Shown: positions 5,081 through 60,300 of the stretch, piece after piece
Layout of the letters: each line of letters starts with the position of its first letter
Position numbering within the stretch: the first letter of the stretch is position 1
Virus record (IMG/VR): IMGVR_UViG_3300031957_002643
Span: 248,001-312,000 of that record
Length of the DNA: 64,000 nt
Strand: one strand, 5' to 3'
The notes under the pieces: generated by a model
Database searches by the model: none
Told to the model about the DNA's origin: nothing
The model's input: the letters and a program-made list of their open reading frames with translations, nothing else
Position numbers and translations under genes: made by a program

Positions 5081-5509
5081 ATGAATAATGCTCATGTACA
5101 AATCGAATGCAATGACACAAAATTATTTTTAAGTTCCGGCTATGCCTTTGGAGCTAAACACAATTTTGGAGAGAAATTGTTTAAATACCTTCTAGAGAAA
5201 GTTGCTGAAGGTGTAGGTGATGAGGTCAATGTTCAGTCTTTATATCATTCGGTGAACGATGTTGTTAGATGGTTGCAGGATAACGGTGGAATTTATTTTC
5301 AGTCGTATCCCGAAAACATGGGCCACTATTGGTATCATATCAAAATTCATCCAGATAATTGGGGAATTGAGGTTCGCTACGTTGAGCGTGATTTTCATTT
5401 TCAACGAAACGGTGATGATGATTGGTTGGAAGAACCAGATCATGCCCTAAATAAAAGACTCTTGACAAGCGATCCCGTGCTTGTTATTGGAAAACAAATG
5501 CCATCATAG
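5081..5509 (+). CDS. Hypothetical protein
   Basis: ORF track; start trimmed to ATG at 5081. Confidence 0.55.
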   Translation: MNNAHVQIECNDTKLFLSSGYAFGAKHNFGEKLFKYLLEKVAEGVGDEVNVQSLYHSVNDVVRWLQDNGGIYFQSYPENMGHYWYHIKIHPDNWGIEVRYVERDFHFQRNGDDDWLEEPDHALNKRLLTSDPVLVIGKQMPS

Positions 5510-5575
5510 CTCAGTTGGTAGAGCGCTTGATTTGTAATCAAGATGTCCGGGGTTCGACTCCTCGTGGTGGCACCA
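5500..5575 (+). tRNA. tRNA-Thr(TGT)
   Basis: Cloverleaf, CTTGA-TTTGTAA-TCAAG, CCA. Confidence 0.95.
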
Positions 5576-6822: not shown

Positions 6823-6866
6823 GTAGTTGACGGATCAAAATATAACCCTTATAGTAAAATCAACAT

Positions 6867-6942
6867 GGCCCCGTAGCTCAGCGGTTAGAGCAGATGCCTC
6901 TAAAACATTTGGTCGTGGGTTCGAATCCCACCGGGGCCACCA
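6867..6942 (+). tRNA. tRNA with CTA anticodon (amber suppressor type)
   Basis: 76-nt cloverleaf; standard numbering gives GATGC-CTCTAAA-ACATT, so U33 precedes C34-U35-A36; C31.A39 mismatch; CCA; own promoter upstream. Confidence 0.8.
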
Positions 6943-6960
6943 AATTTGTAAGGCTTGAAG

Positions 6961-7233
6961 ATGTCTAATACGCTTACCATCGAAGAATATATGAAGGCAC
7001 AATCCCTTAAGTGGTGGGGTCTGTTCCCTTCTAGTAATTCAGGTCTTTCCGATCTCAAGCAAGAATTAATCACCTCCAAGAACAAGTACGGTCGCTTTAG
7101 CGCCACAAATGATGGAATTTTCATCTGCGATTCTGATTGCTTCTCACAGCTTTGTGAGTTTGCCAAAGAGCAAGGTATCGAATGCGAGATGAAAATTTAT
7201 GGTGAGATTCAAACAAGATTCCCCTTGACGTAA
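6961..7233 (+). CDS. Hypothetical protein
   Basis: ORF track. Confidence 0.55.
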   Translation: MSNTLTIEEYMKAQSLKWWGLFPSSNSGLSDLKQELITSKNKYGRFSATNDGIFICDSDCFSQLCEFAKEQGIECEMKIYGEIQTRFPLT

Positions 7234-7253
7234 GGGTATAACTACTGTATAGT
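7225..7253 (+). promoter_or_regulatory. Sigma70-type promoter upstream of the amber-containing PTH2 gene
   Basis: TTGACG-N17-TATAGT. Confidence 0.75.
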
Positions 7254-7282
7254 ATCAGTATTGGTCAGCAAAGGAGAAAGAA

Positions 7283-7708
7283 ATGACCTAGATCACTCGT
7301 GAAGAAATTCTGGAACGCAATGCGAATGACGTTTCGGATAACAATCTGTATATGTATGCTATCATTCGCAAAGACCTTGATATGCCTCCGGGAAAATTGG
7401 CTTCTCAAGCCGGTCATGCCTTCACTGATTCTCTCAGTGCCGCATTAGACCAAGACCCTGATCGCTACCACAACTACCGTCAAGGCGGTGGTGGTTCCAA
7501 AGTGGTCCTCAAGGCAAAAAGCGATCTCCAACTCATCAACACGTATAATCGCATTCTCGAACTCGGTATTCCGTGTGCGATGATTGTCGATCAGAAGCAC
7601 GTGATGCCTCCCCACTTTGACGGTTCTCCCGTCATCACGGCGCTGGGCATTGGTCCGTGTTATCGTGATGAGGTCCATCAAATCGTCAAAAAATATGGGT
7701 GCGTGTAA
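7283..7708 (+). CDS. Peptidyl-tRNA hydrolase PTH2 family, with in-frame TAG at codon 3
   Basis: AAGGAGA SD then ATG ACC TAG ATC..., in frame (69 nt) with the 7352 ORF; MYAIIRKDLDMPPGKLASQAGHA PTH2 motif; the 7352 ATG has no SD. Confidence 0.75.
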
Positions 7709-8298
7709 TGTGTAAGGATTATACGAAACTCAAGTCTCTTGACGAACTTGGCTGTGCGATGATGAAATGTCAGCAGACCAAGACACAGGATGTGTTGGAA
7801 CACGGTTATTCCATTCACAATTACTTCCGCGATCTTAAAGATCACATTCTTTATGGTTCGGAACTGCAATACGAATGGAAACTACCGGATTGGATTTATG
7901 AAGAAAATCTCTGGGACCAACTTTTGGATTACCAGACGATCCGATCCTATCACATCTATCATGATTGTGGTAAGCCGTTCTGTCGATACGTTGACGATGA
8001 GGGAAGACAGCACTTCCCAAACCATGAAACCATCTCTGGCCAAGTGTGGCGACACATTGGGGGTGATGAGCAAATCGCTCGGTTGATGGAAATGGATATG
8101 GATATTCATCGCCTTCGTACTGATGGTGTTGAAGAATTCGCGTCCAGACCGGAAGCGGCAACCCTTTTGATCACTGGTTTGTGTGAAATCAATTCGAACG
8201 CTCGAATGTTCGGCGGTATTCATTCTACCAGTTTCAAAATCAAATATAAAAATTTGGCCAAGTATGGTGGTCGAATTGCTGAACGTCTTTGTGCGTAA
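7708..8298 (+). CDS. HD-domain phosphohydrolase
   Basis: YHIYHDCGKP motif; TAATG coupling to the PTH2 gene. Confidence 0.65.
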   Translation: MCKDYTKLKSLDELGCAMMKCQQTKTQDVLEHGYSIHNYFRDLKDHILYGSELQYEWKLPDWIYEENLWDQLLDYQTIRSYHIYHDCGKPFCRYVDDEGRQHFPNHETISGQVWRHIGGDEQIARLMEMDMDIHRLRTDGVEEFASRPEAATLLITGLCEINSNARMFGGIHSTSFKIKYKNLAKYGGRIAERLCA

Positions 8299-8381
8299 CT
8301 GGAAAGCCCTCAGAAATGGGGGCTTTTCTTTTATTCCCAATTGATGTAAGTATTCATGGAGAGAATAAATGGAGGAACAAA

Positions 8382-8905: not shown

Positions 8906-8979
8906 GCCGGTTTCGTCTAATGGCAAGACACCTGTTTCGTAATCAGGGAATAGGGGTTCGATTCCTCTATCCGGCACCA
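8906..8979 (+). tRNA. tRNA-Thr(CGT)
   Basis: Cloverleaf, loop TTCGTAA, CCA. Confidence 0.9.
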
Positions 8980-9711: not shown

Positions 9712-9787
9712 GCTCTCTTAGTTCAGTTGGCTAGAACGCGGCTTTGGTAAGGCTGAAACATTGGTTCGATCCCAATAGAGAGCACCA
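9712..9787 (+). tRNA. tRNA-Thr(GGT)
   Basis: Cloverleaf, loop TTGGTAA, CCA. Confidence 0.9.
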
Positions 9788-10939: not shown

Positions 10940-11125
10940 CTAGTGTGCTTTTAATCTTTTGAATGTCATTGCCTTGATCGATGCTTTTTCGATTTTCCCT
11001 CGACCTCGCAAAAACACAAAACGTCCCTTATTGTCCTCAAATTGATCCACAAAGGAACACCCGTCTTTCAGTTTAACAAAGACGTGTGTTCCTTTTCTGA
11101 ATGACGTATGTGGACTACCAGCCAT
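10940..11125 (-). CDS. Small hypothetical protein (TAG stop)
   Basis: ORF track. Confidence 0.5.
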   Translation of the reverse strand: MAGSPHTSFRKGTHVFVKLKDGCSFVDQFEDNKGRFVFLRGRGKIEKASIKAMTFKRLKAH

Positions 11126-12394: not shown

Positions 12395-12456
12395 AAAAAT
12401 CGAAAATACAATAGAAAATCACATTAAACATAAATACTTCGTGTCTGCGGAGTATA

Positions 12457-13020
12457 TTGAAGATGAAAAATATTTCAGCGTATATGAAACTGTCTTTAGA
12501 GGTTCGACAGCAACATTTGAATTTAAATGAGTCATGTATATATCGTGGCGGTTATTCATATCAATTTCGAGGATTATTGGCTCACTACTTGGATACCACC
12601 ATACCAAATGGTCATCAAGCTCATGCGGCTCACGCATGTCATGATAGTGAATGTTGCAATCCAAACCATTTATATTGGGCAACCGCAAGTGAAAATTGTA
12701 AAGATAAATTCTCATCTCCACAAGGAAAAGAACATAGAAAAATATTATCTGAAAAAATGTTAGGTGATAAAAATATAAATCATAACAAAAAGCCATGGCT
12801 GGTTACTAACGCCAAAATACATGGTTGGGCAAAAGCAGGAGACATATACAATCAGACTGTTATGAATGGTTGGGATTTTAATAAACACGGACAAGGCCCA
12901 TCATATTTGATAAATGAATTTGATTTGGCAATGGGAACCGCTAGAGCCATGGTTAGGATGTTCAAATCTGGGTGGAATCCGCACACTGATGGTGATTGGA
13001 AAAATAGGTTTACAGTTTGA
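12457..13020 (+). CDS. HNH (His-Cys box-type) homing endonuclease-like protein
   Basis: HACHDSECCNPNHLYWATASEN motif; AT-rich; directly upstream of tRNA-Leu. Confidence 0.75.
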   Translation: MKMKNISAYMKLSLEVRQQHLNLNESCIYRGGYSYQFRGLLAHYLDTTIPNGHQAHAAHACHDSECCNPNHLYWATASENCKDKFSSPQGKEHRKILSEKMLGDKNINHNKKPWLVTNAKIHGWAKAGDIYNQTVMNGWDFNKHGQGPSYLINEFDLAMGTARAMVRMFKSGWNPHTDGDWKNRFTV

Positions 13021-19477: not shown

Positions 19478-19978
19478 ATGCTTAGAACTATCTTTGAGGC
19501 TGTGATTGGCCCACTTGGTGCAATGTGGGAATTTATTCTTGGTTCCAAATGGTATAGCCATTGGTTCTTTTTTGGAGATTGGTCCGAAGCAACATATTGG
19601 ACCAATGATTGGTACTTTTATGTTGTCGCTGTCACTACTCTAATTGCGTTCATTCTCATTTACTACCTCGCGCAAATTGTAGAACCCAGAAGCAATCTGG
19701 AAGAATATAATCGTCGCAATTATTCATATAATGCAGGGTGCACTGTTCAACATCAGAATCTTGTATGGCACATCGCCGCATTTCCAGTCTCATTGTTGAT
19801 CGGGGTTGGTGTTTCTGTCGTGCTATTCGTGGTACTCTTCGGACTACCAGTGATCCTCATGGGCGTGTTTAGTATCTGTTGGTTCATGGTTCCAGTATTC
19901 CTCTTTTCTTGGATTGTTGGCCAAGGCTTCAGTATTCTTGAAAAAAGAAAGCCTACTGTATCTGCAAATACTGATTGA
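19478..19978 (+). CDS. Multi-pass membrane protein
   Basis: SD AGGAGG; several TM segments. Confidence 0.65.
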   Translation: MLRTIFEAVIGPLGAMWEFILGSKWYSHWFFFGDWSEATYWTNDWYFYVVAVTTLIAFILIYYLAQIVEPRSNLEEYNRRNYSYNAGCTVQHQNLVWHIAAFPVSLLIGVGVSVVLFVVLFGLPVILMGVFSICWFMVPVFLFSWIVGQGFSILEKRKPTVSANTD

Positions 19979-20027
19979 CAAACAGTTCTCTCCCGTGTAT
20001 AAAGAATATAACACGGGAGAACAACAC

Positions 20028-21179
20028 ATGGAAATCTATTTGGTCGGTGGTGCTGTCAGGGACATGCTCATGGAACGCGAAGTTCGTGACCGTGATTATG
20101 TCGTTGTGGGTTCCACCCCGGAAGAAATGCTGGCCAACGGCTTTAAGCAAGTTGGTGCTGATTTCCCTGTCTTCCTCCATCCTGAAACTGGTGAAGAATA
20201 CGCATTGGCTCGCCGTGAACGCAAGTCGGGCCGGGGCTACCACGGTTTTGAAGTTGAATTCGATCCGACCGTAACCCTTCATGAAGATTTGGCTCGTCGT
20301 GACCTGACCATCAATGCTATGGCGTTTCATGAAGCATCAGAGGAATTGATCGATCCGTTCGATGGTGCCGATGACATTGATGATTGTGTTCTTCGGCCAG
20401 TATCCGAAAAGGCATTCATGGAAGACCCGGTACGTGTTCTGCGTGCTATTCGGTTCCTTGCCCGGTTTGGCGATGAGTGGGACCTTTCATACGAAATTCA
20501 TGAATGTATTCGGAAGATGCTTGCCAACGGTGAATTCAAGCATCTCACCAAGGAACGTGTCCTTCTGGAATTGCAAAAAGCAATGAAGGAACCAAGTTGG
20601 GATGCATTCTTCTATACTTGTATGGCGGTGAATGATCGGTACAACCACACAAGTATATTCCGTACTATCCTGTGTGAAATGGACGGGACGCGCCGATTCG
20701 CAAAGATCGTGGACTATGACGAAGAATGGGAATTGTGTGAAGATATTGCCGAATGGTCAGATGCGAAGCGTATCTATTACATCGCAACTCAAATTCCTGA
20801 CCTCAGCGATATATTTGAATTCCTCAAGGCTCCGAGCGATGATATTCTTCGCGCCAAGATCGCCGGGAAATTTGAAGCCAAAGGCCTCATCTATCTCCTT
20901 ACCACCGCAGACCTGTTCAGTAAGGAGGCAGTCGTTGATGTTGCAGAATTGTTCAACCTCTTTAGCCCGGAAAGCAAACCGTTCCGGTTCATGGTTGATC
21001 TCAAGGATATGGGCAACGAAAACATTTTCGAAGACCTGTACTACGCATCTCGTGAAGCCCGCAAACTGAAGTTTTTTGATTTCGAATCATATAGCGGTGA
21101 TCCGAAAGTTGTTGCTAAAATCCTCAAGAATGCCAGACTTCATGCCGTGTCTGAGTTCTTGAAAAAGAAGGTCATATGA
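20028..21179 (+). CDS. cca: tRNA nucleotidyltransferase (CCA-adding enzyme, class II)
   Basis: MEIYLVGGAVRDML..DRDYVVVG..EDLARRDLTINAMA..EDPVRVLRAIRF. Confidence 0.92.
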   Translation: MEIYLVGGAVRDMLMEREVRDRDYVVVGSTPEEMLANGFKQVGADFPVFLHPETGEEYALARRERKSGRGYHGFEVEFDPTVTLHEDLARRDLTINAMAFHEASEELIDPFDGADDIDDCVLRPVSEKAFMEDPVRVLRAIRFLARFGDEWDLSYEIHECIRKMLANGEFKHLTKERVLLELQKAMKEPSWDAFFYTCMAVNDRYNHTSIFRTILCEMDGTRRFAKIVDYDEEWELCEDIAEWSDAKRIYYIATQIPDLSDIFEFLKAPSDDILRAKIAGKFEAKGLIYLLTTADLFSKEAVVDVAELFNLFSPESKPFRFMVDLKDMGNENIFEDLYYASREARKLKFFDFESYSGDPKVVAKILKNARLHAVSEFLKKKVI

Positions 21180-28578: not shown

Positions 28579-30195
28579 TTAGCGAACAAAGTCCGCCATA
28601 ACGTTTGGTGCATTGGAATCAAATCCAACAACGTCGAGCATGCCCGGATCATCAGGATTTGCAATCGTGAAGCCCGTTGAGGTCATGCCAACAACGATGA
28701 GCTTCGCATCGATGCCCATCTTGCGACGGTAATCACGAAGCGCTTCGTGTGGATGGATATTACCTGCCCAAGTTTCATTATCCGTGTAGATAACGAAAGC
28801 ATCAGCTTCGATCTTGTTTTCCATTGCGTAAAGCATTGGAGCAGCACAATCAGTTCCACCGAATGGAAGATTGCTGATCTTACGGATAACACCATCAAGT
28901 GTTGATGCACGACCAAAGTCAAGCGGAGTTACCGCATTAGAGCCACGGTAAGACGAATAACGCGAACCACTGGTAAAACCGACAGTGTGTGTAACTGGTT
29001 CGGTCTTCATAGTGATAAGTGCCATTGCCGCAGATGCGTCACGTGGCGTGATGTTTGAATTCATGATGTTCGAAAACGTCATAGAACCTGAAACATCAAG
29101 CGCAAGAAGATGACGCTTTCCAGTCGGAACAACATTCTTGAAAGAAAGCTTGAATGCATCTTCAAGTGCAGACACAATGTTTCCATTGACCTTCCACGTG
29201 TTGCTTCCACGGAAACCACGACCAGACTTATACGTTGTGAGTGCAAGAAGCACCGCAAACGGATGAATCATCGAATCGTGAAGCGTCTTCTGATCCGTGA
29301 GCCGACGAACTGCCTCCTGTTCAAACTTGGACATCGGCTTGAAAAGATTAATCTTTTCAGAAGACATGTTGCCAAGATTTTTGATCATAGCAGTCATCGG
29401 CATCTTTTCGAAAAGTGCTTCCCATACCTTTGGATCATTAAGAGCCTCGGTCGGAAGTGCTTCACGTGGAAGATTTGCTTCACGGATAAGGCCCGGAAGT
29501 TCCTTCACAGATGCAGTCTTTGCTTCTTCGTATGCCTTGATGATTGGCGGAAGCGTTTCGGTATCAACCGGGCGACCACAAATCCAATCAAAGATCACGC
29601 GACGTTCTGCTTCTGGCGTCTTTGGATGAGAAAGACGAAGAAGGTCACGGTGCGTCCAACCATCACGTTGACGATACTTGACCGCTTGGTAAGCGACCTT
29701 GTTTGCATCAACTTCGGTATACCAGTTCGCAACTGCACGCTTAAGCGCACGTCCCCAACCACGGAACTGTTCGACAAATTCCGCGTAATGGAAAAGATGC
29801 GTACCAATGCGTGCAACCTTTGGAAGTGCCGCGAGCGCATATGCACGAGTCTTGTCATCTTGTGCAGCCGAAGCCATAGCAAGAGCGAAAAGAGCAGCAT
29901 CATTACGGTATGCACGACCGTTCGTGGACACGTCAACAATCATATCGACAGCACGAATACCGTCAGAATCAATTGCCTTCTGTACTGCCGAAGCGTTAGC
30001 TACGGTAAGTTCACGAGACGATGCGTAGTAGGTTGGTGCATCAGAACCGAGCACAAGGAAGCGCTCAAGGCGACCGAACTCATCAAGTGTGAATGAGAAA
30101 CCGCCAGCATTGTTCTTGGATTGCTTTGGGGAAGCCGCTTCATTTTGCGGCGTAACGCGATTGCGCGTTCCAACATTACGGTAAGCTTTAGACAT
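28579..30195 (-). CDS. rsr: Ro60/Rsr TROVE-domain RNA-binding protein
   Basis: NNAGGFSF..LERFLVLGS..KYRQRDGWTHRDLLRLSHP TROVE motifs plus vWA DVSGSM..FGGTDC..TDNETW. Confidence 0.95.
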   Translation of the reverse strand: MSKAYRNVGTRNRVTPQNEAASPKQSKNNAGGFSFTLDEFGRLERFLVLGSDAPTYYASSRELTVANASAVQKAIDSDGIRAVDMIVDVSTNGRAYRNDAALFALAMASAAQDDKTRAYALAALPKVARIGTHLFHYAEFVEQFRGWGRALKRAVANWYTEVDANKVAYQAVKYRQRDGWTHRDLLRLSHPKTPEAERRVIFDWICGRPVDTETLPPIIKAYEEAKTASVKELPGLIREANLPREALPTEALNDPKVWEALFEKMPMTAMIKNLGNMSSEKINLFKPMSKFEQEAVRRLTDQKTLHDSMIHPFAVLLALTTYKSGRGFRGSNTWKVNGNIVSALEDAFKLSFKNVVPTGKRHLLALDVSGSMTFSNIMNSNITPRDASAAMALITMKTEPVTHTVGFTSGSRYSSYRGSNAVTPLDFGRASTLDGVIRKISNLPFGGTDCAAPMLYAMENKIEADAFVIYTDNETWAGNIHPHEALRDYRRKMGIDAKLIVVGMTSTGFTIANPDDPGMLDVVGFDSNAPNVMADFVR

Positions 30196-33921: not shown

Positions 33922-35067
33922 GTGGAGTATGCTATGCCTGTGAATGGAAAACCATCCATCCGTGATGGGTTCGTGAAAACGAATACACTCGGATATGAAG
34001 AAGAATACGATTACCTCGTATTCATTGGAAGATTTCAACCTCTCCATTACGGGCATATGCGTGTCATTGACATTGCGCTACAACTCTCCAAAAAAGTAGT
34101 TCTGCTCGTTGGTTCGTCCAATGTTGGTCGCACCCTGCGTAACCCGTTCACTTTTCAAGAACGTTACGCCATGATCGCAACACAATACGATCATGCCATC
34201 AAGGATGGTCGTCTCATCATCGACTCAATCGATGATATGATGTATGAAGATGACCGCTGGATCGAGCAGGTTCAGACCAAAGTCAACAGCAAAGTTGGCG
34301 ATACCAAAAATGTCGGTCTGATTGGATGTGAGAAAGATCACACCAGTTATTATCTCAGCCTCTTCCCGAACTGGCATAATGTCGGTGTGGAATTCAAGGT
34401 TCCACTCAACAGTACCGATATCCGCAAGGCTGTGTTCCTTCAGGACAAGCTCTGGGATGATCGTGGTTTTGGTGAAACGCAACATGCCAAGAATGAATTC
34501 TACAAATTCTTGGACAAGGCGTGCCCGCCAGAAATCGCTCAAATCCTTCACGCATTTATGTACAATCCAACAGCAGAAGAAATTCGTGAAGAATGGAAGT
34601 GGATCAATGAATATCGTGCAAAGCGCCAGACCAGCAATTATCCGGTGATTGATATCACTGTTGATGCCTGCGTGGTTCAATCTGGTCATGTTCTGGTTGT
34701 TCGCCGCAAGAATTATCCGGGCAAAGGTCTTCTTGCCCTTCCGGGTGGTTTCTTGAATGAAAACGAAATTCGCGAGAAGGGCATGCTTCGTGAATTGCGA
34801 GAAGAAACTTGCATCGATCTCTCGGATACTGTCCTTCGCGCAAATATCGTGAAAGAAAAAGTTTTCGAAGACCCACACCGTTCAGATCGTGGTCGTCTGA
34901 TTACGACTGCATATCTGATCAAACTTCAGGATCGCCCGGAACTTCCCAAGGTGAAGGGTGCTGATGATGCAGAGAAAGCATTCTGGTTGCCATTGTCCGA
35001 AGTAAAACCTTCGATCTTCTTTGAAGACCATGGATTCATTATCCGAAATCTCACGAGCGGAATCTAA
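33922..35067 (+). CDS. Bifunctional NMN adenylyltransferase / Nudix ADP-ribose pyrophosphatase (NadM-Nudix)
   Basis: FIGRFQPLHYGH, RNPFT and Nudix box ALPGGF..E..GMLRELREET. Confidence 0.93.
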   Translation: MEYAMPVNGKPSIRDGFVKTNTLGYEEEYDYLVFIGRFQPLHYGHMRVIDIALQLSKKVVLLVGSSNVGRTLRNPFTFQERYAMIATQYDHAIKDGRLIIDSIDDMMYEDDRWIEQVQTKVNSKVGDTKNVGLIGCEKDHTSYYLSLFPNWHNVGVEFKVPLNSTDIRKAVFLQDKLWDDRGFGETQHAKNEFYKFLDKACPPEIAQILHAFMYNPTAEEIREEWKWINEYRAKRQTSNYPVIDITVDACVVQSGHVLVVRRKNYPGKGLLALPGGFLNENEIREKGMLRELREETCIDLSDTVLRANIVKEKVFEDPHRSDRGRLITTAYLIKLQDRPELPKVKGADDAEKAFWLPLSEVKPSIFFEDHGFIIRNLTSGI

Positions 35068-35260
35068 GGAGAATCGTCATGGCAGTTAAAGTAAGTGAAA
35101 TGTGTAAGCTGACGAGAACTTGTCGCAAGTGTGAAACCGTTCTCGAATTCGAATACACGGATATTACAACCCATAAGGTCAATTTTGATTATCTGGGAGA
35201 TTACGATACCCGAAGAGGTGTAAAGTGTCCCGTATGTGAAAACGTAGTGGAGGTTACGAA

Positions 35261-35635
35261 ATGACTATCAATTTTGAAGATAAAGAGCGTGCTATCGAAC
35301 GCGAGCGTCGTGCTATCGAAGATGAACGTGTTCGACTGGCAGAACGCCAAAAGGCTCTAGAACAGGAAGAAACCGACAACAGAGAACTTGCGGCGAAAAT
35401 GAAATACGAGAATGATCCTCGTATCCCTATCGCCATCCAGCTTCACACGCTCATGTGTAATCACAATCATATTGATGGTTGTAGCTGGTCGTATGAGAGC
35501 AAGTGGCACGACTGGAATATTGGTTGGGCACGCAAGGAATATCTCAAAAAGGCGACCCGTGTCGTGGACATGGCAAATAAATTGGGCATCAAACCTGAAG
35601 ATGCTCTGGAAATCATCAAAGCAGTGAAAGGGTAA
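35261..35635 (+). CDS. Hypothetical protein with N-terminal coiled coil
   Basis: ORF track. Confidence 0.6.
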   Translation: MTINFEDKERAIERERRAIEDERVRLAERQKALEQEETDNRELAAKMKYENDPRIPIAIQLHTLMCNHNHIDGCSWSYESKWHDWNIGWARKEYLKKATRVVDMANKLGIKPEDALEIIKAVKG

Positions 35636-35639
35636 TCCA

Positions 35640-37094
35640 ATGCTTAATAATCCTATTATCGAACTCATTCTCGCAAACAAAGTCATTTCAACGGACAGCT
35701 ACAAGTTCTCTCACTGGACTCAGTATCCGCCGAATACGACACATGTTTCGAGCTACATCGAATCCCGTGGTCTTTCCAGTGAAGTGAAAGATGATTGGGA
35801 AGATGAAGTCGTTTTCTTCGGCCTGCAAGGCTTCATCAAACGTTACCTCATGACGCCGATCACCATGAAGATGGTCGATGAAGCCGAAGAATACTGCAAG
35901 GCGCATGGTGAACCATTCAACCGTGCTGGTTTCGAAATCATCGTGAATGAATATGATGGCTTCTATCCTGTTGAAATTGAAGCGGTTCCAGAAGGAACTG
36001 TTATGCGTTCTCACAACGCACAGGTTCAAGTCGTCAATACGGATGAACGTCTGTTTTGGGTGACTTCATTCCTCGAAACGTCTCTTCTCCGTGCAGTGTG
36101 GTATCCTTCTACGGTTGCTACTCAAAGCCGCGAAATCAAAAAAGTCATTGCATCCTACATGGATGAAACGGCTGGACATCGTGAAGGTCTCGATTTTAAA
36201 CTCCATGACTTTGGTGCTCGCGGTGTAAGCAGTGCAGAATCCGCTATGATCGGTGGTTCCTCCCATCTGGTCAATTTCATGGGGACTGATACTGGTGAAG
36301 CAAATCTCTGGCTTCGTGCTCTCTATGGTGAAGACATGGCAGCATTCTCTGTGCCTGCCAGTGAACACAGCACCATGACGAGTTGGGGTGGTCCTGCTGG
36401 CGAGGTGGATGCATGTCGCAACATGTTGGAAACCTTTGCTGGTCGCTTCCCGATCATCTCTGTGGTTTCTGACAGCTATGACATTTATCGTTGCATCACT
36501 GACATTTGGGGTGGTGAACTGTACGAAGATGTCAAGGCGCTTGAAAAGGTCGGAAGCAAACTTGTTGTTCGTCCTGACTCGGGTGACCCGACGACTGTTC
36601 CTGTTGAATGCATCAAGCTTCTGATGGAAAAGTTCGGGTACACCACGAATGAACGTGGTTACAAGGTTCTTCCTCCGTTCGTCGGTGTTCTTCAAGGTGA
36701 TGGTATCAACATCCGTTCGATCCGCCAAATCCTTGAAAACATGAAGAAAGAAGGCCTGTCCGCCGAAAACATCGTGTTCGGTATGGGTGGTGCCCTTCTT
36801 CAAAAGGTTGACCGTGATACCTTGAAGTATGCGATGAAGGCATCTGCTCGAAAGACTGATGGTGAATGGCATGATGTCTTCAAGCAGCCGGTCACGGATA
36901 AGGGCAAGATGTCCAAGAAAGGCCGTCTGGTTGTTGTTGAAACTTTGGGTGTTGGTGCTCGTGGTCATCTGACTGTTCGTGCCGATGCCATGCTTTCGAC
37001 CGACAAGAACTTGCTTCGCCCGGTCTATCGTAATGGGGAACTTCTCATGGATGATAGCTTGACGGATATCCGCAAACGCGCTAGTATCCGTTAG
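35640..37094 (+). CDS. nadV: Nicotinamide phosphoribosyltransferase
   Basis: TDSYKFSHW, LHDFGARG, SVPASEHS, SVVSDSYD, VRPDSGDP, QGDGI, FGMGGALLQ. Confidence 0.95.
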   Translation: MLNNPIIELILANKVISTDSYKFSHWTQYPPNTTHVSSYIESRGLSSEVKDDWEDEVVFFGLQGFIKRYLMTPITMKMVDEAEEYCKAHGEPFNRAGFEIIVNEYDGFYPVEIEAVPEGTVMRSHNAQVQVVNTDERLFWVTSFLETSLLRAVWYPSTVATQSREIKKVIASYMDETAGHREGLDFKLHDFGARGVSSAESAMIGGSSHLVNFMGTDTGEANLWLRALYGEDMAAFSVPASEHSTMTSWGGPAGEVDACRNMLETFAGRFPIISVVSDSYDIYRCITDIWGGELYEDVKALEKVGSKLVVRPDSGDPTTVPVECIKLLMEKFGYTTNERGYKVLPPFVGVLQGDGINIRSIRQILENMKKEGLSAENIVFGMGGALLQKVDRDTLKYAMKASARKTDGEWHDVFKQPVTDKGKMSKKGRLVVVETLGVGARGHLTVRADAMLSTDKNLLRPVYRNGELLMDDSLTDIRKRASIR

Positions 37095-41498: not shown

Positions 41499-41834
41499 CT
41501 ATACCGTCCAAACAACCTCAGAATCATTGGATGATCCGGCTGTTCGTTGAATGATCCAGATTGGAAGCGGCTGTTCTTCGACGATTGCGCTGGTGGTATA
41601 CGAAGCAACTTCAATCCAATCGTCTGCTGCCCTGAATTTACCAAACAGCTTCAATGTGTCGCCCGAACCAATCTTCACGTACAATTTTAATTTTGCGCCA
41701 TCGTATCTGTCTTTCCAAATACGAAATCCATCATTGAAACCATCGTCAGTTGTGGTTTCAAAATCGACCTCAGAACCATAACCACTTCCGTCTTCGTCCG
41801 CTGTGGTATAGACTACATAAGATTCAGTCGCCAT
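41499..41834 (-). CDS. Hypothetical protein
   Basis: SD AAGGA; TAAATA upstream. Confidence 0.55.
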   Translation of the reverse strand: MATESYVVYTTADEDGSGYGSEVDFETTTDDGFNDGFRIWKDRYDGAKLKLYVKIGSGDTLKLFGKFRAADDWIEVASYTTSAIVEEQPLPIWIIQRTAGSSNDSEVVWTV

Positions 41835-48247: not shown

Positions 48248-48391
48248 ATGGCAAAGAAGACGAATGCATCGAATGCAAGCAATCGGCGTGATCCGGTGAA
48301 GAAGCGTACTTCCATCGGCAATTCTACTCGTTCGCGTCCGACGAACAAGCATTCGACGTTCAAGCGTACTCGCGGGCAGGGTCGTCCGTAA
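48248..48391 (+). CDS. Small Lys/Arg-rich protein (47 aa), not in the ORF track
   Basis: GGAGA SD; MAKKTNASNASNRRDPVKKRTSIGNSTRSRPTNKHSTFKRTRGQGRP. Confidence 0.75.
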   Translation: MAKKTNASNASNRRDPVKKRTSIGNSTRSRPTNKHSTFKRTRGQGRP

Positions 48392-48426
48392 GAGTTAAGG
48401 GAAACTAGGCGTCTGGCCAAGAGGAC

Positions 48427-48769
48427 GTAGGGTCAATCCGCCCAAGCGAAGCGCGAGATACCCGATAAGCTCAGTGTAGACATGATTAGATCGCTGCAAT
48501 GTTCGTGTCGTCGGTCTAGTGGAACTTTGCTGGTGGTAGGCGATAAAAAATCCTACCTGACAAGGATACAAGCAAAACGAACGTATATCGGTTTTGTCGT
48601 CGGTCAGGTACCATCAGTTAATACAGTTTGGTAGCAGAGCGCGGAATGGAATGCCTTTCGCGGGGTAAGGGCAGCGGAGTAATTGACCGCCAGCTAAATC
48701 CCCTCAAGCACCGGGCGCGAAGGACGAGAACAGAGACTCGTTAAGTGACAGTTTAGCACCTGATCCTAC
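48427..48769 (+). ncRNA. Candidate ~340-nt structured ncRNA, family unknown
   Basis: No ORF; terminal GTAGGGTCA/TGATCCTAC helix; internal GGTAGG/CCTACC and CGAG/CTCG hairpins. Confidence 0.55.
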
Positions 48770-48785
48770 CAATCCAATTTTCTTC

Positions 48786-48902
48786 TTGACTTATATCACT
48801 GGTACGTATATAAGTAAGAACACAGTCGGCAACAAAGATCGACAAGAAAACTGACAAATACTGAAAAAACTTCTTGACTTTTGTTTGTGTGTCCTATATA
48901 AA
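48786..48902 (+). promoter_or_regulatory. Tandem P1/P2-like sigma70 promoters
   Basis: TTGACT-N17-TATAAG (48786-48814) and TTGACT-N17-TATAAA (48874-48902). Confidence 0.8.
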
Positions 48903-48906
48903 GGTT

Positions 48907-48929
48907 ACAACGAAAGTTGCTCTTTGACA
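48907..48929 (+). promoter_or_regulatory. rrn-type antitermination signal: GAAA hairpin (boxB-like) plus boxA
   Basis: CAAC-GAAA-GTTG followed by TGCTCTTTGACA (48918-48929), one base from the canonical TGCTCTTTAACA. Confidence 0.7.
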
Positions 48930-51900
48930 TTGTTGGGAAATAAGTGAGACGAACCGATCTTCACGGGTCCATCGGACCTTTGATTAGCATGTATCTCTAT
49001 TGTTCTGCCTTAACAGACCTGTTCTTTACCGGGCAGAATGGTGCGAAGACGAGAGTAGAGACTCGATCCTTAGACTTGATGTGGAGTTTGCAAGCTGCCA
49101 CGAGATAAGGACAAACTCTGATGGCCCCTTGAAGGTCGGTTCGTTGGCAAAGCGTTGATCCGGGCGTGTAGATGGTGTGGACACCATACCGGATAACCCT
49201 TTAATAATCGCCTGACTTAAATATCGGGCTAACCCAGAAAGAAAACACTCCTAAAGAAATAAGGCGTAGTGTTCCTTCCGAGGCGATTAACAAGTTTTGC
49301 GGGATGATGGTGTAATGGAAACACGGTCTACAGTAGTAGGACATCTAGTAAGGTTCAATTCCTTACCCCTCGCATTTGAGAATTTGCATCTGACCCTGTT
49401 TTGGCTTGGTGACCGATAGCGCTAAGACCACCGCGTGTGGAGAAAAGGCGTGTGTAGGAGCTTCGTCTGAAACTGTGGCGACACGGCACTTTAAAGCCGG
49501 TGATGTAATGTGGATGGGCGTTTTTGGAAGCCACGATCCACCGCGTTGCAACTGAGAGCACATAAAGCCGACAGTACATCGGTAAAAGTGCAGCCCCAAA
49601 GGCCACGGGGAACCGAAAACATCTTCCGCAACGGTTTCTATAAGATGTGATCGGGCAGCGCGTTAAATCTTTATCTAGTTGATAGACTAATTGAAAGAGT
49701 GAAAGTACTTTCGAGAAAGTGGAACCTCTGCATCGATGAACTCATCTGAAATACCAATTGTAACAATCGCAAATGCTATAAAAACCGTGAGCAAGGAGAA
49801 TGGCCTTGACAGGCAATTGGTAGGAAGGATGTTTAGTAGTCGATATATGCGAAGCGAAGTGTAGAAGGTATGGAAACTTTAGTAAGGGGAAGTCGCCCGG
49901 ACAGCAGTTGCGATTTAAACCGGGAAATATTGGTTCGATTCCAATGAAACTAGGCCTCATTTGTGCGAATGCACACAACATAATCCGTGAGCAAGTGCTG
50001 GTTCGGGACGTGATACTAGTTAGTCACTGAACCTGTAAAATAAAGGCACCGATCCTTTCGAGGTGGACGCCACGACCTGACCGGCTGGTGTATGATAGGA
50101 AACACGCCCCTATTAACGGGGAATACGGTAGATGCAAGTTCTGCCCGGTCCAATAAATTCCTCTATCATGAGGATATGTAATTGCAGTAACGCCGATTAT
50201 GGTGATCGAACCTTACTGTAATAAATCCCGTTCATACCGGGTAAAAGGCCTAACCAGCCAGTATGACCGCATCGTGACTAGTGTAAAGCCCACATCTGAT
50301 TCGAACGGGTGTGTGGATAAAAGAAGCACGTCCCTCTTCGATAGGGCAAGTGTCGGTTGCAAGTCCGCCGCACGATGCAACAGGTTTTGGTGAGCAGTTG
50401 GTTTTGAAACCTTCGGAATGCCGACAGTCGTAGTAGCGCACGGCCACCACATTTGTTCTACTTAGGACCGACAAAACGATTGATCCCCATAATCTTTCGT
50501 ACAAAACGGTCGCCTACTGATGGAGTAGGAGAATTCGGATCATGAAGCCCACGAAAAGGGTGGATTGTTTCGGAGTATAGCAATCCGGGGCTTGATCTCT
50601 CCGGGGAACAATAGACTGGTGTGGAAATGCAGATATCTCAGCAGGGGACATCAATGCGCCATGTAAAAGGATGCGCGCTCCTGACCAGTTGAGTTCCGAA
50701 TTAAAACCATCGTTCGCCAGATGCATATGGCCAATCTTGGGAGAACACGTGCTGTGTCGCGGTGATTGCAGTAAATAATACGTGAGGTAAAAGTCCTAAC
50801 AACGCCGCGTCGTTTCAAAGAATGCGGTTCCTAGCACATTTGTGGAGTGGATAGGAGCAAAAGCCTGATGCCCATGACAAAGTTCTCTTTGCCCATCAGG
50901 AAATAGCATTTGGGGACTACCGGGAGAGTTCGGTGCTACATACGAGTCCAGACCGTGATGGTATGTTTTCCGAGATAAGCAAAGAAAACATGAAGGCCTC
51001 CATCATGGAACAGCGTACAGATGTCCTTTTTGTCTAAATGGCAGGGTTGATGCTTATCGTCTAATGTCGTGGCCGATTAGGACCTGAAATCGTATGTATT
51101 CTCGTGACGATGATGTAACCGTTAAGACACATCTTCGTTTATTGCATGCACAATGGTGGGAAGATCGGTTCTGTCAGACCGTGATTTGCCAGAGATGCTT
51201 GCTGCGAGAATGAAACTTGAAGTTCCTACATGCCCTGATGGCGAAGCCGGTAGGATTAAATTAGTTGGATGCGCTCAGCTTCAAGTTTCAAAGTTCCGCT
51301 AGTGCACATGCGGAAGCAAGTGTGTGAAGGTATCCGTCAAACGTAAAAGTTTTGGTCCCCTTCTGACCTGTATAAACTAAGACGCCAGAACACAACGTAA
51401 CAGGAGTTGTTTTGGCCATGGGTTAGCTACCATGACTTTGAGCGTCACCACACTTGCACAAGTTTTAGCTGCCACCATCGTATGGTTCGGACAGCCTATT
51501 GAATGAAATAGGAATAAGCAGTGATTGATCTGAAAGCCGTGATGATCAAATTAATAGAATCTGTGAACGAGTAAATGAAGCAAAAGTCATCAGGAGTGAT
51601 CATTACTGGTGGTGAGTAGTGAAACTGAAAGGGAACAAGGAGATCAAGCAGGGAGCAGGTCCACAACCTTTAGGGCGTCCGTGGAATTAGAGGTTCGAGT
51701 CCTCTTTTGGTCTATATTCCGGTTGCCGGGAATGAAATACTCGCCCCTGTTGTAAAGGGAAATGAGATAGCTGATCGCTTGATGCCTTGGCGGGTGGATG
51801 GTGTGATGTACGTGGCATTAAAGTTTCAGGACGTTCTTTTGTCGTTCTCTCCCCGATTAAAACGAGAGAACGTCCTGCATCCATATCAGGGAAAGGAGAT

Positions 51901-52010
51901 CATAACCGGGTCGGTACAAAGGAATGATCTCTGGTAGTGAGGATGGTAGTCCGATTAACCCCATGGACATTGCCCCCTGATCGTTATAACTCACTTATTT
52001 TCCAACAATG
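48928..52010 (+). ncRNA. Giant (~3.04 kb) structured non-coding transcript closed by a 21-bp terminal helix
   Basis: CATTGTTGGGAAATAAGTGAG (48928-48948) pairs with CTCACTTATTTTCCAACAATG (51990-52010); no credible ORF inside; many long stems, GNRA/UUCG loops and T-loop modules. Confidence 0.75.
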
Positions 52011-52031
52011 CATTCCTAGAGGAATAAACCA

Positions 52032-52436
52032 ATGGACATCTGGATCAAACACGACCTTTCACATGCACGTATCAAAAAGACCGAATCTTGGAATTATGAA
52101 CAGGATTGCGTTAATGGTATGTTGACGCCCGGTGATACTTTGTACGGTGTTCAACTTATTACATACGCATATGATTCATTTGGAAAATCAAAAGAGCCAT
52201 CAAAAACATGGCTTTATTTGACTGGTGATCCTACCGATCTTCTTGACTTAATCGATGAGATCGATGAATATCTGTCTTCTTATTCCGAAGATGAGTTGAA
52301 CCAATCCCAATTCGAGTATATCAATCTTGAAACTAAAAAGTTCAAGTTTCGCGATTCGGATAGATATATTGGAGATTTCAAGGGATGGGGCACATCGTAT
52401 GATTCTGTGAATATAAAGATTATCCCCGTTCTATAA
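52032..52436 (+). CDS. Hypothetical protein
   Basis: SD GAGGA directly after the terminal helix. Confidence 0.6.
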   Translation: MDIWIKHDLSHARIKKTESWNYEQDCVNGMLTPGDTLYGVQLITYAYDSFGKSKEPSKTWLYLTGDPTDLLDLIDEIDEYLSSYSEDELNQSQFEYINLETKKFKFRDSDRYIGDFKGWGTSYDSVNIKIIPVL

Positions 52437-57381: not shown

Positions 57382-60300
57382 ATGCATCGTATTGATAGTG
57401 AAGGAAACGTCAATAATAGGTTCAGTGAAGGCAATCCGTCTCTTGGTATTGAAGGTACTAAGGTAACTGCTGATTGGCTCAATGATGTTCAAGAAAATAT
57501 TGCGTATACCATTGAAGCTGCTGGTTTAACTCTGGAAAAGGGCAACAGTGCCCTTTTGGCTAATGCTATTCTTACACTGGTCGGTGAAGGTGGTTCGTTC
57601 TCCAATCTGACTACCAGAATTAGAGAACTGAATGATTTCTATCTTTATGGTGCCCGTAATGTGTTCCGTCAGGATGATGAACCTGATGAAGCAACTCAAG
57701 GTCCATTCTTCGATAATGACATTTGGATTGAAACCGATCAAAATCCAGAAAAGGTATGGCTCTGGAATTCACTAACTGAGACATGGGTTGATACGACAGA
57801 AGAAGCAGCAGCCCGTGGCATTCTTGCAAAACAAAAACAACAAGCAATTGCTGATGGTCTAGTACAAATTTTCATTCAAACCGATACGCCTTCAGGCGCA
57901 TCCGAAGGTGACATCTGGTACAATAAACGAGATGATCTTCTCTTCGTTTATGAGAATAATATTTGGAACCGCGTATACGACGAGGTTGCCAAACGAAACA
58001 TTGTTGAATCTGTCATCAACTTTGCTGTCGATAGTGCACAAGGAACAGCAGATTCGAAAATTCTAACCTACTATCAAGATGATGCACCAACTGGCTTGAC
58101 GGCATTGAATGATGGTGACATTTGGTTTGATACGGATAATAACAACAAGCCGCATCGATATACTCATCCTAATTGGGTTGAAGTTCGTGATGGGCGCATT
58201 GAAGACGCAATCGATTACGTCATTCTACAGGGTGCCATCGCAGATGGCACTATTTTCGTTTACTTCTCTGAAGATGAACCTGATGCAATCAATCAGGCAG
58301 CATTAACACCACCAAATCCTGCACCATCTGAAGGTGATGTCTGGATCGATATCACAGATGAAGGTGGCTCTCCTCGCAATGATCCCTATCTCTTTAGTAG
58401 TGGGTCTTGGGTATTACAGAATGATCCAGAGTTCCGATCATTATTGCTCAGTTTTGCAACAGCCAGATCAATTCAGGATGGTGCGGTAACAATTTATTTC
58501 AGTCCGACCGAACCAGATGATACCTATATTCCGCCACCGCGTTATGGTGATATTTGGTTTGATACTGATGATGTGACCATTGATGATCCTGATGCTGCAA
58601 ATCCTTCTACTGATCCTCAGATCACAGTTCCAAAATGGGAGCAGTATCGTTATGACGGTACAAATTGGGTTCTCATTGAAGATTTCAAACTGAAAATTGT
58701 CGAAGCCAATTTGAAAATTGAAGAATTGGCAAGAGCTAGTGCTGATACTGCATTGTCCGGCCAGATCACAACGGCAACCACTCGTATTGGTGAAAATGAA
58801 GCGACCATTCAGCAATCTCTATTATCGATTAATGGTATTGCCGGTGCATATGGGGTTCGAACCAATGTCAATAATGAAATTGTTGGTTTCGGTTTCCTCA
58901 CTGATTATGAAAGAGAAATTGAATTCACCAAAACTGGATCGTTAGATTTCAATCCGGGTGATGAAGTTTTTATTGGTGCTGATTGGGCAACAAAAACGTA
59001 TTCCGCAGTCATCGTCACGGTAGACAATGTGAATGGCACCATGCGTGTCATCTCGGAAAGTGGAACGTTTGCTACTGGTGTAACAATCACGTCTCGATTG
59101 CGCTTGGACGCTAATGCTACTATCGACGCAGGAACCGTAAATCCGACACCGGGCACGTCAGAATTTGAAATCATCGTTGACAAATTCAAAGTCACCGATG
59201 GAACCACTTCTTCGACTCCATTCACTATTAGTGGGGGCGTTGTTTATGTCGGTGCTCTCGATACAAGCACCCCACAGGTTCAATTCATTGGTGATTTTGC
59301 TAATGAGCCAGATACCACATATGCAATCAATAGCATTTATAAGAACACGACAAACGGTAACACCTATATTCTTGAATATATTTCTGGTTCAAGTGGTCCA
59401 AAACAATGGGTGATCTTCCTAGAGAGAGGTGCTAACGCTAGAACGCTTGTTCTTTCATCCGACTCTCCGGGCTATCTATTTGACTCTAATGCTGTAAGCA
59501 CGCCATCAAACGCAAGCATCACATTCCGGGTTCAATATCAGGGCCAGTCGAGTGCAATTGGTTCTGGTGACATTACTGTTTATGATAAAGATGATGTCGC
59601 TTTAAGTCCTACGCTCTCAAATACAAATTCAGTAGATAGTACAGTCAATGACTCTGGCGGAACAACGCATTCCGGTTATTATGAATTTGATCTTGCATAC
59701 TCTGAATTCAGTAGTTCCGATTTTCCTCTTACCGTTGAAGTGGACGATGGAACTCTTACTGACACATTAGGTATTGTTCGTATCGTTGGTTCAACAGCAA
59801 AAACACTATCTATTAATCCAGACTCATTTGTGTTCTTGTTCGAAGATGACGTTGCAACCGATCCACAAAACTCATCGATCCATTTCCGCATTCAACACCA
59901 GAGCTTATCAACAGCACCAACAACTTCTGAGTTGACCATTGAAGATGCTGATAGCACCACGTATTCATCAACAAACTTCACATCTGCTGGATCAGGATCA
60001 GGCGTAACTAGCTTTGAGCTTCTATGGTCCACAGTATCAGCAGCAACGTTCCCAATCACGGTTACTGTTACGGATGAGGGAATCACTGATGTTGTTGTTA
60101 TCCGTCAGCTTATTGGTGGACTAGATGCTATTTCGGGCTTCCTGACAAATGAATCACATTTGGTTCCAGCGGACGAATTAGGCAATATCGAATCTGGTGG
60201 ATTGGATGGTGCAATTGGTACATTCGATGTGTATCAGGGCATCAGTAAAAAGAATACCGATGTCACTTATAGCGTAGCGTCATCAACCGGCTGTACCGCA

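Follow-up and report, generated by a model that had tools for sequence, protein, structure and literature searches.

The window analysed here is a 64,000-nucleotide stretch (positions 248,001 to 312,000) of IMGVR_UViG_3300031957_002643, a phage contig of 335,552 bp. It carries a gene for a PTH2-family peptidyl-tRNA hydrolase in which the third codon is an in-frame amber codon (TAG), and a short way upstream a transfer RNA (tRNA) gene with the matching anticodon CUA. The PTH2 gene probably acts as a translational lock to which the phage's own amber suppressor tRNA is the key, with readthrough of the stop as the presumed step. Conservation of the TAG, linkage to the tRNA and covariation of stop codon and anticodon support such gating, which the first-pass annotation of this DNA had put forward. 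The gating is well supported, and its purpose is conjectural. The arrangement appears to be a conserved, previously undescribed translational switch, with a stop or +1 gate in approximately nine of ten related phage genes.

The PTH2 gene occupies positions 7283..7708 on the plus strand and comprises 141 codons including the TAG, with a TAA stop at 7706-7708. A consensus scan finds a promoter-like site TTGACG-17-TATAGT at 7225..7253 (plus strand), just where a promoter had been proposed; it would serve PTH2 and the HD-motif gene that follows it. The Shine-Dalgarno (SD) sequence AAGGAGA (7271..7277, plus strand) lies 5 nt ahead of the ATG and is kept in relatives. The start codon (7283-7285), one threonine codon ACC (7286-7288) and the amber TAG (7289-7291, with A at +4) follow on the same strand. 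After ATG-ACC-TAG come 138 in-frame sense codons, the first 20 of which run to an ATG at 7352 that has no SD-like sequence upstream. The layout of SD, ATG-ACC-TAG, sense codons and SD-less internal ATG thus reads on the sequence as it was first described.

The post-TAG stretch of the protein matches Pfam PTH2 (PF01981) with E = 5e-21 and 75.5 bits (cut-off 23) over profile positions 2-112 of 115, and the domain begins near residue 20 of this stretch. In a profile search, the closest solved structure was 2zv3 (annotated 'Peptidyl-tRNA hydrolase'; E = 6e-22), aligned end to end, as was 1q7s (bit1; E = 2e-16). The protein belongs to phrog_1866. Residues K35, H42, D110 and T116 are invariant across 20 phage sequences, and the motifs GK...Q..HA and D-G...T..G.GP are kept; canonical enzymes lack the PPHFDG insertion of the phage subfamily and are shorter at this point. 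The gene product is a PTH2-family peptidyl-tRNA hydrolase with predicted activity.

The amber suppressor-type tRNA gene (6867..6942, plus strand) is 76 nt long. ARAGORN reads a 7-nt anticodon loop CUCUAAA with the anticodon CUA, a discriminator A73 and an encoded CCA end, and the Rfam tRNA model agrees with this assignment at 70.7 bits, the second best of 15 tRNA matches in the window; the gene stands at the position first given for it. Cloverleaf, 7-nt anticodon loop, U33 and CUA are those of an amber suppressor tRNA. A promoter-like site TTGACG-17-TATAGT with 10/12 consensus matches (6827..6855, plus strand) is situated 12 nt upstream, and its hexamers are identical to those of the site ahead of PTH2. 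In the orthologues from four related contigs, the anticodon loop is invariant and the acceptor stem shows compensatory changes on both strands, which argues for selection on the gene as a tRNA. The closest E. coli tRNA is ileX, tRNA-Ile2, with 78-82% identity. No single amino-acid identity can be read for tRNA(CUA), since both the discriminator base and the acceptor stem vary among the 30 tRNA(CUA) genes adjoining PTH2 in different phages. The residue at the TAG position is variable in homologues.

The part of the protein encoded after the TAG was used as query in a protein search, which returned about 200 relatives, and the DNA of four, with PTH2 76-81% identical to that of the window, was taken for comparison. 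The closest relatives are annotated as proteins of 118-133 residues that start at various internal codons (ATG, TTG or GTG); the TTG and GTG codons are fallback starts of the gene callers and have no SD. All four relatives share the opening of a TTGAC promoter box, SD, ATG, ACN, TAG and ATH, which is invariant in the five phages. The changes around the fixed TAG are synonymous, codon 2 being ACC, ACA or ACG and the post-stop codon ATC, ATA or ATT. The ATG at 7352 is replaced by CTT (Leu) in three of the five. In each of the four relative contigs, a tRNA(CUA) gene lies 350-950 nt upstream of PTH2. Distant homologues with an ordinary Met start have an N-terminal extension (TxEEIL...) to which the 20 codons from the TAG to residue 24 can be aligned; because this extension is translated elsewhere, these codons are considered coding and not a leader. 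A convincing conserved RNA structure was not found around the TAG in the window's clade (covariation term +1.72).

The subfamily was surveyed by scanning IMG/VR, JGI metagenomes and GTDB genomes with protein profiles. This gave about 180 loci, from which 91 distinct phage-type sequences were classed by custom scripts with a simple SD rule, many of the contigs being fragments. An in-frame TAG soon after an SD-preceded ATG was found in 50 of the 91 loci, an in-frame TAA in five and an in-frame TGA in one. In 27 further loci, the ATG is in the -1 frame relative to PTH2 and meets a stop 2-8 codons in, and a +1 shift would be needed; eight loci have an ordinary start. In the 50 TAG loci, the stop comes two to seven codons after the SD-ATG, i.e. 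at codons 3-8. It comes after two to four codons in 40 of the 45 TAG loci with an in-frame ATG within nine codons, and directly after the ATG and one more codon in 27 of these 45. Five loci (L053, L096, L108, L111 and L114) have no clear in-frame ATG ahead of the TAG. Of 66 canonical PTH2 loci, archaeal and other, not one has an in-frame SD-ATG leader with a short open reading frame (ORF). The same codon being present in five diverged phages and 50 distinct loci, the possibility that the TAG is a sequencing error or a private mutation, raised when it was first noticed, does not hold.

The context of the stop is biased as well. Among the 50 loci, the TAG is followed by A in 25, by G in 23, by C in 2 and by T in none (purine 48/50, binomial p = 2e-12); after the ordinary TAG stops of the window, the next base is mostly T or C. 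In E. coli, as Bossi is said to have found in 1983, amber suppressors work best when a purine follows the stop. Furthermore, tRNA(CUA) was detected in the flank of 29 of the 50 TAG loci as compared with none of the 41 others (Fisher p = 2e-10), the flanks examined for tRNAs being at most 4 kb and many contigs short. It is the commonest tRNA of the TAG loci, with 29 cases, the next having 7. In 11 loci, it ends only 10-35 nt ahead of the TAG. According to the PTH2 tree, the recoding class has changed at least 16 times and recoding has been lost in only three small lineages. This pattern is as expected if the gate itself is selected, since the class changes often while the gate is kept. In this tree, the TAA gene of L048 is sister to the TAG genes of L018 and L045. 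TAA replaces TAG at the same early position in L040-L042 and L048 (and in L122-L125).

Two cultured phages show the stop codon changing together with the anticodon. Agrobacterium phage Atu_ph07 is described as carrying a single suppressor tRNA, with the anticodon UCA (PMC6102473), and this gene was confirmed at 430,713-430,787. The leader of its phage-type PTH2 gene consists of an SD, ATG, five codons and TGA (MIGEHF-TGA); the gene itself (MF403008.1 198552-198884) is annotated as a hypothetical protein with a start at an internal codon. In its relative, Sinorhizobium phage Phosso, the leader is an SD, ATG, two codons and TAG (MKY-TAG), and a tRNA(CUA) labelled tRNA-Undet lies 4.6 kb upstream of PTH2 (PV764938.1 171983-172058). 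The Atu_ph07 gene is nested in a clade of TAG genes with tree support of 100/98. This covariation of stop and anticodon (TGA with UCA, TAG with CUA) is the strongest support for the proposed gating by a suppressor tRNA.

Genes for a suppressor tRNA and a peptidyl-tRNA hydrolase are both listed for XacN1 (PMC5852040) and Atu_ph07 (PMC6102473), with no link drawn between them in the accessible parts of these texts. The authors of the XacN1 study report reading through 18 amber stops of annotated genes and finding no target (PMC5852040), and those of the Atu_ph07 study proposed many possible UGA targets (PMC6102473). The PTH2 of XacN1 is of the canonical type with an ordinary start. XacN1 and Salmonella phage Munch were rejected as further examples, their PTH2 genes being of other types and having ordinary starts.

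The window as a whole is not recoded, and the statement of the first-pass annotation that TAG still ends genes was borne out within these 64 kb. Reading TAG as sense joins no genes, and 10-11 predicted genes end in TAG, including minus-strand ORFs at 10940, 21206 and 38340. The many internal and rare terminal TAGs that characterise genetic code 15 were not found here. The search for early in-frame TAGs that had been suggested was run over both strands of the window (SD-preceded start, at most 15 codons, a stop, then at least 70 open codons) and returned exactly one TAG case, PTH2. A scan for stops lying between coding-like sequence returned one TAG, at 41501 on the minus strand. Readthrough at this site (41499-41501, minus strand) would join a 111-residue ORF to a 788-residue ORF in the same frame; this candidate was rejected, as the relative L121 has different frames and TAA TAA between them. 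Of two other ORFs open when TAG is read as sense, that at 12397-13020 is an ordinary gene starting after the TAG and that at 50232-51002 does not look coding. Since no other interrupted gene survives the scans, PTH2 is the only candidate suppressor target within the 64 kb.

The proposed mechanism is as follows. Ribosomes would start at the AUG at 7283 behind the strong SD, read one Thr codon and meet the UAG. If charged tRNA(CUA) is lacking, release factor 1 (RF1) would terminate translation after the dipeptide, or the dipeptidyl-tRNA would drop off; no PTH2 and little HD-like protein would then be made. With charged tRNA(CUA), the UAG would be read as sense, the purine at +4 favouring suppression, and the 141-residue PTH2 would result. 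Ribosomes arriving at its TAA would restart on the HD-like gene, whose ATG overlaps this stop. The tRNA and the operon have the same promoter hexamers; therefore, PTH2 and HD-like protein would be produced only once the phage tRNAs have been made, matured and charged. The best guess at the purpose is an interlock on, or proportional control of, a module for tRNA recycling and repair. As the host cannot read the UAG codon, the module would be on only when, and as far as, phage decoding works. As an interlock, the gate would delay expression until the phage tRNA genes are transcribed, processed and charged. Alternatively, the amount of PTH2 might be tied to suppression, which itself would generate readthrough products, stalled ribosomes and peptidyl-tRNA to be cleared. 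The very early position of the stop would avoid making a truncated protein.

Several points weigh against gating by the suppressor. Both the charging of the tRNA and its reading of UAG are predicted from sequence, and any reason for a phage to gate PTH2 is conjectural. An active suppressor would also read the at least ten TAG-ended genes of the window, the resulting extensions being short (median 7 codons). In the flanks examined, tRNA(CUA) was not seen in 21 of the 50 TAG loci, with flanks of 4 kb or less and many short contigs. For the TAA variants L040-L042 and L048, no tRNA(UUA) was found within 10 kb. Finally, the codon after the TAG is ATT or GTT in 28 of the 50 loci and ATG in two (L076, L083), which would also fit a restart at a weak start codon.

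The latter point leads to the most serious rival explanation, an improbable one even so, in which ATG-ACC-TAG is a two-codon upstream ORF tuning the yield of PTH2, and ribosomes terminate and then initiate anew on the neighbouring AUC (in relatives AUU, AUA or GUN) with no suppressor involved. Stop-start junctions are a common coupling device, and 37 of the 50 TAG loci have ATT, ATC, ATA, GTT, GTA, GTG or ATG as the post-stop codon. The codons found after the stop, however, also include GTT, GAA, GAC, GGC, AAG, ACT and CTG, which are not start codons. Moreover, reinitiation leaves unexplained why TAG is preferred over the commoner TAA and TGA (50 of the 56 in-frame cases), why tRNA(CUA) is adjacent, why TGA occurs with a UCA suppressor, and why the 27 relatives of the +1 class have tRNAs with matching anticodon loops. 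It is slightly less probable again that PTH2 starts at the ATG at 7352, where the canonical PTH2 fold begins, and that SD-ATG-ACC-TAG is a decoy, i.e. a minigene similar to bar which titrates or senses the hydrolase by dipeptidyl-tRNA drop-off. In E. coli, there is a functional link between two-codon minigenes and Pth. The 118-residue product from 7352 would hold the PTH2 fold, and the gene callers picked this start (P0001, P0005). Early peptidyl-tRNA drop-off is described as frequent (PMC10192219). The internal start, which was already regarded as a possible objection when the TAG was first noticed, fails on comparison: its ATG has no SD and is a leucine codon in three of five close phages, and the codons before it are homologous to translated extensions. 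In every locus the frame between stop and domain is uninterrupted, in most TAG loci it contains no in-frame ATG, and neither the tRNA linkage nor the covariation would be accounted for.

A general change of code, with TAG as sense (code 15) in part of the genome and the PTH2 TAG as one of many, is very unlikely. Phages with tRNA(CUA) are described as often recoding TAG in late genes (Borges et al., 10.1101/2021.08.26.457843). The HD-like gene of L021 and L075 does have a mid-gene TAG, and the window covers only 64 of the contig's 335 kb. Against this stand the absence of gene merging in the window, its at least ten TAG-ended genes and the lack of any other in-frame TAG flanked by coding sequence. 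A code change would also scatter TAGs along the gene, and in 50 loci the PTH2 TAG is at codons 3-8. Ordinarily, a stop as early as codon 3 would be taken as the mark of a pseudogene or an assembly error, which is scarcely credible here: the same codon recurs in independent assemblies from many samples and sources, and the frame that follows it is uninterrupted and shows purifying selection.

If the preferred reading, gating of PTH2 by the phage suppressor tRNA, is correct, it would extend to the next gene. This gene (7708..8298, plus strand) encodes a protein of 196 residues with an HD motif, and its ATG overlaps the PTH2 stop (TAATG). A terminator-like hairpin with a T-run (8301..8338, plus strand; a 12-pair stem with 6 G-C pairs) closes the two-gene unit. 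As a weak SD-like GGGTG precedes the ATG, the gene is likely, though not certain, to be translationally coupled to PTH2. The HD-like gene adjoins PTH2 in about 40 loci, which include both recoding classes, and in the window's clade its start overlaps the PTH2 stop. The protein belongs to phrog_14850 (function not assigned; E = 4e-56), and in 21 sequences the motifs H..HDCGKP..H..D are invariant or nearly so (H32, H85-D86, H102/H106, D130). Of the earlier description as a TAATG-coupled HD gene, the overlap and the motif stand, and the Pfam search gave no match for the protein, the HD model included. Its profile gives a weak match of 68 residues (E = 4.5e-4) to PDB 3wfp ('Poly A polymerase'), in the HD region, and Atlas structure matches were to bacterial CCA-adding enzymes (TM 0.74-0.76 by query). 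For this protein, a relationship to the HD domain found in CCA-adding and A-adding enzymes is likely, as is a function as a tRNA 3'-end phosphohydrolase. In E. coli, the HD domain of the CCA enzyme acts both as a 2',3'-cyclic phosphodiesterase and as a phosphatase. If the phage protein is similar, the pair would clean tRNA 3' ends, PTH2 removing the peptidyl group and the HD-like protein the phosphate. In L021 (4547-4549) and L075, two contigs of 359 and 571 kb from one lineage, the HD-like gene has an in-frame TAG in mid-gene (CCT TAG ATT). It falls at a variable position, often Gln in relatives, and would be a second suppressor target in the module.

The +1 class has a different gate at the same place. 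Its 27 distinct loci (class members L046, L050-L052, L054-L060, L062-L065, L067-L074, L078, L081, L082, L093, L112, L126-L132) all have the SD-ATG in the -1 frame relative to PTH2 (27/27), where a stop follows 2-8 codons later. At a distance of 36-200 nt upstream there is a short tRNA, its nucleotides 34-37 being complementary to the four bases of the shift site. The tRNA called 'Ile(aat/gat)', with G37, pairs with CAUU in ..UCG CAU UGA C..; the one called 'Ser(gct)', which has no long variable arm, pairs with UAGC in ..UAG C..; and 'Asn(att)' pairs with UAAC in ..UAA C... From these pairings, the +1 loci look like cases of dedicated +1 (quadruplet) decoding by the neighbouring tRNA. A motif ACGG-N3-GACCGCA downstream of the shift site is kept even at synonymous positions (for example, L052:3927-3971, L057:3968-4012, L054:3912-3956). 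It is followed by a hairpin with a covarying stem (CUGC/GCAG, CUAC/GUAG, UCGCC/GGCGA, CCGCCC/GGGCGG, CUGAG/CUCAG). No Rfam family was found for this conserved leader element, which may be a stimulatory or operator element. Two leaders, L019:2922-2960 and L056:241-280, seemingly need both readthrough of an in-frame TAG and, three codons on, a +1 shift at UAG-C. They would represent a double lock and are sister to the ordinary TAG gene of L061.

Some loci of the TAG class have unusual RNA genes beside PTH2. In L026, a phage transfer-messenger RNA (tmRNA) gene (2452-2801) is located directly upstream of the TAG-gated PTH2, and a tRNA-like stretch with a UUCUAAAA loop (approximately 2900-2985), not called by ARAGORN, lies between the two. 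Odd tRNAs with four-base (gtaa, gcaa) or two-base anticodons were called by ARAGORN just downstream of PTH2 at L027:3394-3471, L096:4355-4433, L099:760-838 and L106:557-632.

Of the described systems, the nearest is the recoding of stop codons that is proposed to time late genes in alternatively coded phages. Phage-encoded tRNA(CUA) or tRNA(UCA) likewise makes stop-bearing genes translatable, and only once it is present, in the recoded phages (crAss-like, Lak and others) described by Borges et al., where a role in post-transcriptional timing is proposed. These phages have many internal stops in structural and lysis genes and shifts in coding density, whereas the window has the standard code and a single stop in a single gene. 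The word 'hydrolase' does not occur in the accessible text of that study (10.1101/2021.08.26.457843), and the target here is a tRNA-recycling enzyme. Unlike in those phages, the stop of the PTH2 system is always within the first eight codons, and the tRNA is often directly ahead of its target. The closest parallel in logic is bldA, in which a dedicated tRNA gates few genes: this tRNA-Leu(UAA) of Streptomyces controls a few UUA-bearing regulators such as adpA. There, the codon is a rare sense codon and the system is cellular and serves development; in the PTH2 system, a viral tRNA is paired with a stop codon placed right at the beginning of the gene.

The closest formal parallel is prfB, a translation-factor gene with an early stop. 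In this gene for release factor 2, a programmed +1 frameshift at an early in-frame UGA sets the level of the factor. The same layout, with an early stop in frame 0 and the product in +1, is shared by the 27 PTH2 relatives, some of which also have UGA followed by C. The window gene differs from prfB, as its product is in frame with the ATG and no change of frame is involved. The +1 relatives differ from it too: their stop is preceded by CAU, which does not allow the re-pairing seen with CUU, and the neighbouring tRNA is the likely agent. Simple autoregulation is not implied, because PTH2 does not recognise stop codons. The two-codon bar minigenes of lambda yield dipeptidyl-tRNA, a substrate of Pth; they are free-standing and toxic to pth-defective hosts. 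The PTH2 leader resembles them in having a start, one sense codon and a stop, but it is in frame with the hydrolase gene and is paired with a suppressor tRNA. The literature search gave no description of a link between PTH2 and suppressor or frameshifting tRNAs. In the known systems compared, there is neither one dedicated target gene nor a stop in the first eight codons, and PTH2 is not among the targets.

According to its gene traits, the source is a jumbo phage only distantly related to cultured phages. Near-identical DNA was not found among GenBank phages, and the rIIA-like protein has at most 31% identity to known phages. The window has 17 tRNA genes (ARAGORN), and its proteins include rIIA-like, Ro60/TROVE, NAMPT, NMNAT-NUDIX and CCA-adding-enzyme-like ones. 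Around the tRNA array, there is a toolkit for RNA and nicotinamide adenine dinucleotide (NAD) metabolism (19914-21179; 28579-30195, minus strand; 33922-37094), consisting of the CCA-adding-enzyme-like protein (PolyA_pol head), Ro60/TROVE with a vWA domain, NMNAT-NUDIX and NAMPT. Two regions (48391-52032 and 57500-64000) hold few or no convincing ORFs whichever way stop codons are read and gave no Rfam match. Three tRNA-Thr genes flank the module of tRNA(CUA) and PTH2, at 5500-5575 (UGU), 8906-8979 (CGU) and 9712-9787 (GGU). Their order is the same in all close relatives, and codon 2 of PTH2 is Thr in the window's clade. The association is probably incidental, since codon 2 varies by clade (Leu, Ser, Arg, Gln and others).

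Many large phages with the standard code carry suppressor tRNAs for which no target is known, and PTH2 provides a concrete one. The phage PTH2 genes of this subfamily are systematically annotated as too short or as hypothetical; pipelines miss the target because the gene is annotated as starting after the stop. Nonsense suppression would here be an evolutionarily stable switch of a single gene, of which the type varies (TAG, TGA, TAA, +1) and the gate stays. In a broader and more tentative interpretation, which is given somewhat less than an even chance, phage-type PTH2 is the common target of a family of orthogonal tRNA-mRNA switches, with amber, opal and perhaps ochre suppressors or +1 tRNAs, encoded beside the gene, as its sole route to translation, and serving as a safety interlock for the clean-up module of PTH2 and HD-like protein. 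If this is true, it would provide natural dedicated quadruplet decoders and single-gene suppressor tRNAs, and could account for the 'orphan' suppressor tRNAs of standard-code phages. The pairs of tRNA and leader could also serve as natural orthogonal parts for the control of expression. The switch is tied to genes for tRNA recycling and repair, and these are relevant to the way in which phages handle or protect the pool of tRNAs in the course of an infection.

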